This document shows, one piece after another, positions 13,995-15,293 of a stretch of DNA of 32,000 nucleotides. The DNA is from Wallemia ichthyophaga EXF-994 (taxonomy: Eukaryota > Fungi > Basidiomycota), in NCBI RefSeq assembly GCF_000400465.1, contig NW_008806289.1:90001-122000 (forward strand), given 5' to 3'. How positions within the stretch are numbered: the stretch's first letter is position 1; each line of letters begins with the position of its first letter. The notes under the pieces were generated by a model, which was given only the letters and a program-made list of their open reading frames with translations, was not told the DNA's origin and did no database searches. Made by a program: the position numbers and the translations under genes.

Positions 13995-15293
13995 TTAAGC
14001 AGCAACTCTGCCAGTGACTTCACCTTCGACAATTTCAGATGACTTAAGCGACTCGATGGCAGTGTGAGCAGCTCTAACACCAGACTAGTCGCGAGTCAGC
14101 AAAGCATTACCATCAACCCAATTCACTCACGCCAAACATACCACCAAACGAGGCACCGCAGCGAGGAGCACCGTCTAATTCGGACAACTCCATACCACCA
14201 ACGACCAAACCTGGGAAAACTTCCCTAGTTTGGTTGACAATTTGATCTTCACTCTTGTTCATATCGAGTGCCCTCATATCGCCGAGCTCAACAAATCCAG
14301 CCGAAGCAAGTCTCTTGACAGAGAAAGCACCGAAAGGACCGTCGTGGCCGCAGAATGAGATGGTCACTGGTGAGGTAATGGTGTTTGGATCCATGCTATG
14401 ACACTGTCAGACATTACCACCACATAAACCCCCTACACACCAAGATTGAGTGTCATGGTTAAGCGAAACTAACGTCCAGTTGGACACGATACCAGTAACA
14501 CGTTGCTTTCCTTCAAAGTCTTTCTTCACCATCTAGTCGCGTAAGAAGTTAGAACAGCTAATGCCAGTGCGAAAGACCTCGACTTACAAGATCTTCACAC
14601 TACAACAGCTGCGCGTTAGTACAAGCCCATTAAAGGGCACCTCTAAATTCAAATGCAACTCGACGACGCAGCCATAACGCTGGTCCCGCTATTGACGGTA
14701 TATTCTCAGCCTGAGCGTCTGCTCTAGGCACCCGTGTGCACGAATAAAGAAGCATTGTAAAAGTAGAAAGTGCCTCTATAAACAATAGATATACCTACCG
14801 CAGTCGCGTTGAAGAGCTTGACGTTAGGAAGGGCCAGAGTCTTGGCGAGAAGAGTTGAAGTGAGGAGAGCTGCGTGCTTGACAACAACAAAGCGACCTTC
14901 GTCTTCGTATGGGACGCCAACCTTATCAAGGAAATTGTGCGCTGGTTTGCGTACAACCATTGCTGAAAAAAGTTGACCTCCGAGCCAAGCACCGCCACCT
15001 GGAGCAACTGCTGATTCGACGATTGTCACCTTGAGATCGGGTCTCTCGGTGGCAATCGTGAATGCGCATGATAGACCAGCGCTACCAGCACCGACGATCA
15101 ATACATCAGAGATGGCTCTGTCGTACATGTCGTTAAAGTAGCGCGTTGTCATTGCTCTAGATGTCTCATACTCCTTGATTGGTGCGAAGCTGTAGTTGCC
15201 ATTGTAGTCTTCGTTAGAATCGGCGTGGGCTTTAGCTTGTTGCTTGAGTTGCTGGATGTTAGCTGGTTGTTGTGCTGCTTGAACTGGTGCCAT
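13995..15293 (-). CDS. THI4: Thiazole synthase Thi4; exons 15293..14799, 14599..14588, 14532..14441, 14395..14131, 14084..13995; about 317 aa
   Basis: [51 protein letters not shown]|CEDL, NHDTQSC|[25 protein letters not shown]. Four GT-AG introns restore frame. Confidence 0.95.
14653..14741 (-). promoter_or_regulatory. TPP (THI-box) riboswitch aptamer in THI4 intron 1
   Basis: Minus strand reads GUGCACAC-GGGUG-CCUAGAGC agac GCUCAGG-CUGAGA-AUAUACCG-UCAAUA-GCGGGAC-CAGC guuaug GCUG-CG-UCGUCGAGUUGCAU. It has the GGGUG and CUGAGA..UACC signatures, a paired P3, a paired P5 with a 6-nt loop, GCG, and a P1. It sits in a thiamine-biosynthesis gene. Confidence 0.85.

Follow-up and report, generated by a model that had tools for sequence, protein, structure and literature searches.

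In the green alga Chlamydomonas, the thiamine pyrophosphate (TPP) riboswitches of THIC and THI4 reportedly lie in an intron within the coding region, where mis-splicing adds a premature stop; they are also said to involve an extra exon, alternative folding of the P1 5' side and a canonical P4/P5. In Neurospora crassa, the NMT1 and THI4 switches are found in introns of the 5' untranslated region (5'-UTR), where P4/P5 nucleotides serve as the mask for a second donor (Cheah et al. 2007, summarised in Li & Breaker 2013, PMC3597705). In the alpha/alpha' switch of N. crassa NCU01977, a strand next to or within the 3' side of P1 has two possible partners, P1 itself and a remote upstream element close to the 5' splice site; pairing with the remote element draws the splice sites together without TPP (Li & Breaker 2013, PMC3597705). 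Moreover, 'Type III' TPP switches have been described, in which the internal intron that bears the aptamer is 200-400 nt long and offers two donors separated by a stop; THI4 switches of this type were listed for Thielavia, Verticillium, Trichoderma virens and oomycetes (Mukherjee et al. 2018, PMC5882874). Here we describe a candidate TPP riboswitch in an intron of THI4, the gene for thiamine thiazole synthase, of the basidiomycete Wallemia ichthyophaga EXF-994. It lies in a 32,000-nt stretch of contig NW_008806289.1 (positions 90,001 to 122,000, hereafter the window), in whose own numbering all coordinates given without a locus name are expressed.

TPP switches of THI4 are scarcely recorded in this phylum. 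Supplementary Dataset S1 of Mukherjee et al. 2018 (PMC5882874) holds no THI4 switch from Basidiomycota and, for W. ichthyophaga, only an NMT1 switch, which is intronic, of Type III and placed at NW_008806295.1:90905-91057. Using covariance models tailored to fungi, Vargas-Junior et al. 2024 (PMC11683625) found the sole basidiomycete THI4 switch in Rhodotorula mucilaginosa and concluded that TPP switches play little part in the thiamine biosynthesis of Basidiomycota. A literature search returned no paper that mentions Wallemia together with riboswitches. To judge from the sequences compared below, THI4 of the Wallemia lineage carries, in an intron that splits the coding region, a genuine and strongly conserved TPP riboswitch whose P4/P5 has diverged far enough to bring it below the threshold of the family model. 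An earlier, sequence-only reading of the window had pointed to this element and had presented its position in the middle of the coding region as unusual. The position is real and differs from that of the 5'-UTR switches, but internal-intron TPP switches, including some in THI4, had already been catalogued. Mid-coding placement is therefore not new; the Wallemia THI4 element itself appears to be previously unlisted.

In the window, THI4 occupies 13995..15293 on the minus strand, and its spliced translation gives a 317-aa product from five exons (15293..14799, 14599..14588, 14532..14441, 14395..14131 and 14084..13995). The SCMDPN cysteine motif is present in this protein, which shares 93-94% identity with Wallemia mellicola Thi4 and 62-71% with the Thi4 proteins of other fungi. 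Exon 1 measures 495 nt, exactly 165 codons, and the introns measure, in order, 199, 55, 45 and 46 nt. The sequence-only reading had placed a 199-nt intron at 14600..14798, after codon 165, and an aptamer at 14653..14741, in a gene whose other introns are short; all of these coordinates were correct when read on the minus strand, and the lengths of the other introns bear out the last point. Intron 1 is in phase 0, opens with the donor GUAGGU, carries the branch-site sequence UACUAAC (14615..14621, minus strand, from sequence reading) and closes with the acceptor UAG. The aptamer core, counted from the 5' strand to the 3' strand of P1, covers intron positions 58-146, and the acceptor is situated 53 nt past P1.

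We compared this intron with those of several other loci. They comprised two W. mellicola strains (L001 and L002), a Logan assembly whose Mdm34 is 79% identical (L006), strains almost identical to the window (L010-L012), and a sequence obtained from two ENA metagenomes (L008 = L009) that is more distant, with a Thi4 exon 1 that is 85% identical and a riboswitch intron of 263 nt. In every one of these loci the same intron follows NATA and is followed by a CEDL microexon and then a short intron; the riboswitch intron is 199 nt long in the window and 200-263 nt in its relatives. The aptamer is at least as constrained as the THI4 coding sequence: its identity to the window is 91% in L006, 92% in L001 and 78% in L008, when the exons show 84-92%, 77-92% and 73-92%, and introns 2-4 show 54-67%, 44-50% and 44-47%, respectively. 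Substitutions in the aptamer lie in the loop of P3, in the linker of J3-2, in J2-4, at a single position of L5 and at a bulged nucleotide of P4. A covariance model built from the close lineages recovered exactly one copy per locus, including that of L008 (90 bits), and no further copy elsewhere in the window.

The pyrimidine-sensor arm (14704..14735, minus strand), as seen by direct reading and Rfam alignment, consists of the P2 5' strand ACGG(G)U, a P3 helix GCCU-A-GAGC/GCUC-AGGC with the loop AGAC, and the J3-2 segment CUGAGA; the P2 3' strand ACCGUC follows at 14694..14699 (minus strand, Rfam and structural alignments). This half had been called canonical, and GGGUG, CUGAGA and UACC are indeed all present. 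CUGAGA (14704..14709) and ACGGGUG/ACCGU, the elements that in TPP aptamers grip the pyrimidine ring, are invariant in all lineages, and P1, the P2-P3 arm and the P4-P5 arm are arranged around a three-way junction. P3a is absent, as in other eukaryotes. In the structural alignment, 26 out of 26 modelled pairs are formed in each of the six distinct sequences; sliding the partners by 1-3 columns as a control brought pairing down to 29-43%. Two distal P3 pairs are changed on both sides in L008 (A-U to G-C and G-C to A-U), and two pairs are changed on one side only; distal P3 also shows a C.G to U.G change in L006 and L001. The covariation alignment with related THI4 introns, which had been proposed as a check, gives the two compensatory P3 pairs.

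We mapped E. coli thiM numbering onto the window and checked it against the conserved positions of Appasamy et al. 2013 (PMC3764141), who list U39-A43, G60, C77 and G78 as conserved TPP-contact positions. The window aptamer keeps U39-A43 (within CUGAGA), G19, the equivalents of A53, A56 and A84, and G60, C77 and G78. Moreover, in GCGG-G-AC...GCUG-CG the distance from the third G of GGG to the G of CG is 18 nt and is invariant in all lineages, a G-to-G spacing stressed for fungal TPP aptamers (Mukherjee et al. 2018, PMC5882874). The claim of a complete TPP aptamer with a rewritten pyrophosphate arm is upheld by the family match, the presence of all helices and contact nucleotides, the conservation across lineages and the compensatory changes in P3.

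The family match itself is modest. The Rfam gathering score for TPP (RF00059) is 54.3 bits, an operational cut-off that does not define a structure, and a scan of the whole 32-kb window at this score gave no match. In a permissive search of 14300..15100 (801 nt), RF00059 was the best match, with 25.0 bits and E=0.015 at 14745..14643 (minus strand); the alignment spans the whole model and includes P1, P2 (ACGG/CCGU), P3, CUGAGA, P4, P5 and the CG of J5-4. RF00059 led the matches to the aptamer both in the window and, of four further lineages that were scanned, in three (E 0.007-0.04); the copies scored 25.0 bits in the window, 24.0 in L001, 26.4 in L012 and 29.2 in L008. A 27-kb scan of five loci in E-value mode did not recover the W. 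mellicola copies, for which only short-range searches show a match. The 32 kb contain a single copy of the core motif GGGTGC..CTGAGA..ACC, for which shuffled sequences give an expectation of 0.01. A scan of JGI metagenome contigs for the invariant P4/P5 string gave 0 matches. The RF00059 score is unconvincing alone; it is the comparative evidence that we find convincing. Divergence of P4/P5, where fungal TPP aptamers are otherwise conserved most strongly according to Mukherjee et al. 2018 (PMC5882874), explains the low score, and the surveys missed the element because the family model scores it at half its threshold. The sequence-only reading had foreseen that standard models might miss this variant, which is confirmed by the absence of a match at the gathering score and of a THI4 switch from the W. 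ichthyophaga entry of Mukherjee et al. 2018; the RF00059 search that it had suggested returned the element as a sub-threshold top match.

Next to the riboswitch intron lies a 12-nt microexon, UGUGAAGAUCUU (14588..14599, minus strand), which encodes CEDL and is separated from exon 3 by the 55-nt intron 2. CEDL is required to rebuild the conserved NATA-CEDL-(I/M)VK block of Thi4, and the microexon was found in five of the five Wallemia-type lineages (also at L001 3711..3722, L006 8651..8662 and L008 979..990). In the THI4 genes of Ustilago maydis (L003 2044..2090), Coprinopsis cinerea (L004 2133..2180) and Sporobolomyces salmonicolor (L005 2659..2700), neither intron 1 nor intron 2 is present, NATACEDL or NATAVEDL is contiguous, and no TPP match was obtained. 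Among the basidiomycetes sampled, the riboswitch intron is, as far as these sequences indicate, specific to the Wallemia lineage. Because the NATACEDL/NATAVEDL block is uninterrupted in these three species, both introns that flank the microexon look like gains in the Wallemia lineage. Public THI4 models of W. mellicola conflict at this place: P0001 has the CEDL microexon, P0003 and P0004 skip it with an in-frame loss of CEDL, and in P0002 23 codons are translated through the aptamer. The riboswitch intron and the microexon account for the disagreement among public Wallemia THI4 gene models.

When the intron is kept, an in-frame stop is met after 24, 56, 32, 3 and 4 codons in five lineages, the first value being that of the window. 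In L010, which is almost identical to the window, a 2-nt TC insertion in the 5' flank of the intron (~3506..3510, corresponding to ~14786..14790 of the window) moves the stop from codon 24 to codon 56. It had been claimed that retention gives a UAG within P3 (14726..14724) and a protein truncated to 189 aa. Read-through of the window agrees with this; the location of the UAG within P3 is not conserved and is incidental, since the position of the retention stop differs in each lineage.

We consider it probable that the 199-nt THI4 intron carries a working, lineage-specific TPP aptamer that lowers Thi4 by negative feedback on splicing when TPP is high. The sequences show the anatomy, the conservation, the compensatory changes and the premature stops; we infer that TPP binds, in which direction it regulates and which helices switch, and control of splicing is proposed by analogy with NMT1 and THI4 of Neurospora. 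When TPP is scarce, the intron would be removed from GUAGGU (14798) to UAG (14600), the 12-nt microexon would be joined, and full-length Thi4 would be made. When TPP is plentiful, it would bind between the CUGAGA/P2-P3 arm and the G60/C77-G78 pocket of the P4-P5 arm, lock P1 and shift the intron into a poorly or wrongly spliced fold; the retained or mis-spliced RNA would then meet a premature stop, and Thi4 synthesis would fall.

How bound TPP might reach the splice sites in the window lineage can be suggested with low confidence. An upstream element U, GGCAC-U-UUCUA (14764..14774, minus strand), complements UAGAG-GUGCC (14636..14645), with which it might form a 'zipper' or alpha-type pairing over a long range. 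In the ligand-free RNA this pairing would bring the 5' splice site within ~40 nt of the branch site, which corresponds to a normal intron size in this genome. The P1-extension 3' strands GAAU and UAGAGG (14640..14651, minus strand) can instead pair with AUUC and (G)CUUCU at 14741..14753; a ligand-stabilised P1 may extend through AUUC/GAAU and CUUCU/AGAGG and so take UAGAGG from the zipper, and the remaining zipper strand may refold into a small hairpin, GCCC-UUUAAU-GGGC (14625..14638, minus strand), 3 nt upstream of the branch-site sequence. The pairing of U with UAGAG-GUGCC comprises 10 bp with one bulge and is conserved in the window, L006 and L001, where a C to U change keeps a G.U pair and no compensatory double change is seen. 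The P1 extension is found in the single-sequence minimum free energy (MFE) folds of all lineages, that of L008 being different and equally long (UAUUC/GAAUA). The stem of the hairpin is kept and its loop is variable in L006 and L001, and L008 has CCC-GUAA-GGG at this place. Constrained folding was applied to the window, L006 and L001. When the aptamer is not enforced, a difference of only 1.6-5.1 kcal/mol separates the long-range conformer from the conformer with P1 extension and hairpin; with P1-P5 enforced, the latter is ahead by 6-12 kcal/mol.

This scheme shares features with each of the described systems and departs from all of them. Like Neurospora NMT1 and THI4, the window has a fungal TPP aptamer in an intron of a thiamine-biosynthesis gene, with non-productive mRNA as the expected output at high TPP; unlike them, its intron splits the coding region, and no second donor or P4/P5 complement is evident. 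As in Type III switches, the aptamer occupies an internal intron with the acceptor just downstream and an in-frame stop upon retention, but there is no convincing second donor in the window lineage. The choice of UAGAGG/GUGCC between U and CUUCU follows the same logic as NCU01977, although the long-range helix is only a candidate here, and the NCU01977 intron, from a gene for a transporter, is 650-900 nt long with multiple donors inside it, whereas that of the window has 199 nt and a single donor. The Chlamydomonas THIC and THI4 aptamers likewise lie in coding-region introns, in a green alga and with a canonical P4/P5, and TPPsw-THI4 of Rhodotorula mucilaginosa is also a basidiomycete THI4 switch, from a different subphylum.

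Several observations weigh against a working TPP switch, and some of them concern the atypical pyrophosphate-sensor arm (14659..14689, minus strand). With RF00059, as known from the E. coli thiM and A. thaliana THIC structures, the window shares the pyrimidine arm P2-J3-2-P3, the pyrophosphate arm P4-P5, the CUGAGA T-loop and GGGUG...ACC. It differs from that family in P4, which is GCGG/UCG(N)C rather than CCU(G)/(U)AGG, in the P5 closing pair, which is C-G rather than G-C, and in L5, which reads UUAU or UCAU rather than UAAU. The nearly universal U59-A80 pair is G-C in the window aptamer. P4, which had been described as a plain G/C swap, is in fact GCGG/UCG(U)C: beside G60 it gains a G.U pair or one more G, and its 3' strand bears a bulged U/A. 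J4-5 is G-AC in place of G-AU, U62 being replaced by C, and the loop-closing pair of P5 (CAGC/GCUG) is flipped; this P5, and J4-5 given as G-GAC, are as they had been claimed. L5 comes in two versions, G-UUAU-G (the window, L010 and W. mellicola) and G-UCAU-G (L006 and L008); both keep U68, A70 and U71, and A69 is U or C, so that the UAAU loop for docking into P3 is one A short. Across lineages the arm, including the CG of J5-4, is invariant except for L5 position 3 (U/C) and the P4 bulge (U/A). Because U59-A80 is swapped, P4 is enlarged and a docking A of L5 is lost, affinity or specificity could differ from those of an ordinary TPP aptamer.

Other adverse points concern the score and the switching. 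All scored copies reach about half of the RF00059 gathering score, and P2, P4 and P5, being invariant among the sequences found, contribute zero covariation. With its extensions P1 has 12-14 bp; it should, according to the predicted folds, be stable without ligand, which is unusual for a switch driven by P1. The complementarities of the window lineage (U with UAGAG-GUGCC, and the 5' splice site with AUAUACC) are not longer than those of shuffled sequences. When ensemble accessibility was compared between the free and the aptamer-enforced states, neither the branch site nor the acceptor region changed consistently across lineages. Masking of the 5' splice site by P4/P5 in the Neurospora manner was rejected, as RNAduplex energies of P4/P5 or of the entire aptamer against the flanks were no better than those of shuffles.

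The departure of P4/P5 is nevertheless one that we regard as moderate, with the architecture and all known ligand contacts intact. Canonical fungal examples follow ACUUGAU-CNNG-loop-CNNG-CG-AAAGG, and their P5 is variable (CUGG, CUAG, CAGG or CAAG; Mukherjee et al. 2018, PMC5882874, Supplementary Fig. S4). The U59-A80 pair is not absolute for TPP aptamers, because the experimentally validated aptamer of N. crassa NCU01977 has C-G in its place. The strongly atypical character ascribed to the aptamer by the sequence-only reading thus holds for the rewritten P4/P5, which is real, but the element is less exotic than was thought, as P5 varies in fungi and U59-A80 is also missing from NCU01977.

The more distant L008 may switch differently. 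Its intron resembles a donor again after 74 nt (GU at +75 in ACG|GUAAUG), with in-frame stops before this second site from codon 5 on. The AUGACG|GUAAUG site contains a 9-nt perfect complement of the P2-3'/J2-4 strand of the aptamer, UACCGUCAU, a length reached in 19 of 1000 shuffles. L008 seems, from these matches, to use an alternative 5' splice site masked by the P2 3' strand, and it plausibly conforms to the two-donor logic of Type III, with P2-3'/J2-4 rather than P4/P5 as the masking strand. Two upstream look-alikes of the P2 5' strand were also noted in L008, GACGGUAAUG (784..792, intron positions 69-77) and GACGGGUAG (~741..749, intron positions 26-34), each with a GU; the former is the 9-nt perfect complement of UACCGUCAU, and the latter is a 7-nt perfect complement of the downstream UACCCGU. 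In the window, the first in-frame stop upon retention falls inside P3; upstream of the aptamer, the window, L006 and L001 share no GUs but those at +1 and +5, and these two make up the donor consensus.

Four other explanations were weighed against a TPP-responsive negative feedback. That the resemblance to a TPP aptamer arose by chance in an ordinary long intron is extremely improbable: the score is below the gathering threshold and its E-value becomes ~0.6 if scaled to the whole window, but the element sits inside THI4, its core motif is expected only 0.01 times per window, and conservation in five lineages together with compensatory pairs refutes this explanation for practical purposes. It is unlikely, too, that a former TPP aptamer survives as a rigid 'zipper', unresponsive to TPP, whose role would be to make an over-long intron short enough for splicing where introns normally measure ~50 nt. 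The long extended P1, predicted to form without ligand, would suit such a relic, as would an off-consensus pyrophosphate arm that has lost one L5 docking A, and the lack of statistically convincing alternative pairings dependent on TPP in the window lineage. A structural role would not, however, be expected to hold the unpaired contact nucleotides invariant (CUGAGA, the J4-5 G, the J5-4 CG and the J2-4 A's), nor to preserve a G-G spacing of exactly 18 nt between lineages in which identity of the neutral introns has fallen to 44-50%, and THI4 is exactly the host gene expected for a TPP switch.

The altered arm could also belong to a functional aptamer with altered sensing, which would respond to thiamine, thiamine monophosphate, hydroxymethylpyrimidine pyrophosphate (HMP-PP) or TPP at a much shifted affinity, so that THI4 and NMT1 would answer different signals. 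The changes do cluster in the pyrophosphate arm and are invariant there (the extra G by G60, G-C for U59-A80, the flipped P5 closing pair and UAAU to UYAU), and the detection of the W. ichthyophaga NMT1 switch and not the THI4 one by Mukherjee et al. 2018 suggests that the two aptamers differ; yet the metal-pyrophosphate residues G60, C77 and G78 and their spacing are intact, P5 varies among ordinary fungal aptamers, and NCU01977 responds to TPP without U59-A80. We therefore hold altered sensing to be improbable. An ON switch, in which the AUAUACCGU strand would mask the sole 5' splice site GCG|GUAGGUAUAU in the free state and TPP would promote productive splicing, is very unlikely. The 5' splice site of the window does show 7-nt (GGUAUAU with AUAUACC) and 6-bp (GCGGUA with UACCGU) complementarity, and in L006 CACCGU meets GCGGUG, both sides having changed; but a 7-nt complement arises in 173 of 1000 shuffles, neither L006 nor L001 retains the 7-nt register, and GGUAU is explained by the ordinary donor consensus. 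Moreover, an end product that turns on its own biosynthetic gene would make no regulatory sense, and the known THI4 and NMT1 TPP switches are OFF switches. A broader proposal is that Wallemiomycetes would possess a distinct TPP-aptamer subclass, with a frozen, remodelled pyrophosphate arm and perhaps a ligand preference or set-point different from that of the NMT1 switch in the same genome, acting through a splicing mechanism new to THI4, a ligand-controlled long-range zipper in a single-donor mid-coding intron against a 12-nt microexon. We regard this as rather unlikely.

Further pairings and sites within the intron were examined and set aside. Pairing of the 5' splice site with AUAUACC is lost in L006 and L001 and is not above chance. 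Pairing of the branch site with L5/P5 (UAACGC with GCGUUA) exists in the window, is weaker in W. mellicola and is absent from L006 and L008. A downstream GURCCC could act as an anti-P2 strand, with 7-8 bp in both lineages; this pairing needs a pseudoknot or the displacement of a stronger P1, occurs in no MFE fold, and can be given only a remote chance. An AG at 14609..14610 (minus strand), 6-7 nt past the branch-point A, is present in every lineage, and the real acceptor lies 9-19 nt further on. If this proximal AG were used, a stop would result in the window and L008 and a frameshift in L006 and L001; it was set aside as an acceptor, being probably too near the branch point for use.

The surroundings of THI4 were inspected as well. 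The GC content of the window is 47.5%, compared with 40% for the W. mellicola locus, and Mdm34, encoded beside THI4, is 67% identical to W. mellicola Mdm34. The gene order RICTOR, Mdm34, THI4, Gti1/Pac2, VWA is common to the window, W. mellicola and L006; in L008 a MAS20 gene lies downstream of THI4 instead. An open reading frame at 8256..8993 (minus strand) matches NAD(P)H-hydrate dehydratase (Carb_kinase, E=4e-51) and, weakly, the hydroxyethylthiazole kinase family (E=5e-8); the second match probably reflects a shared ribokinase-like fold, and no link to the riboswitch was seen. Elsewhere in the window, 795..2954 (minus strand) encodes a KilA-N/APSES-type protein with ankyrin repeats, and 3089..6316 (plus strand) encodes an SLA1 homologue (SH3, SHD1). 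Antisense to THI4 exon 1, at 14938..14990 (plus strand), a weak match to the archaeal C/D-box sR46 (11.4 bits, E=8.1) was taken as chance.

The natural, conserved substitutions in the pyrophosphate arm of this element offer a test case for how much of the arm TPP recognition needs. The compact 199-nt, single-donor intron beside a microexon would likewise suit the study of splicing control without masking of a donor by P4/P5. Overall, although surveys deny TPP switches much of a role in Basidiomycota, at least the Wallemia lineage appears to place THI4 under the control of an aptamer.

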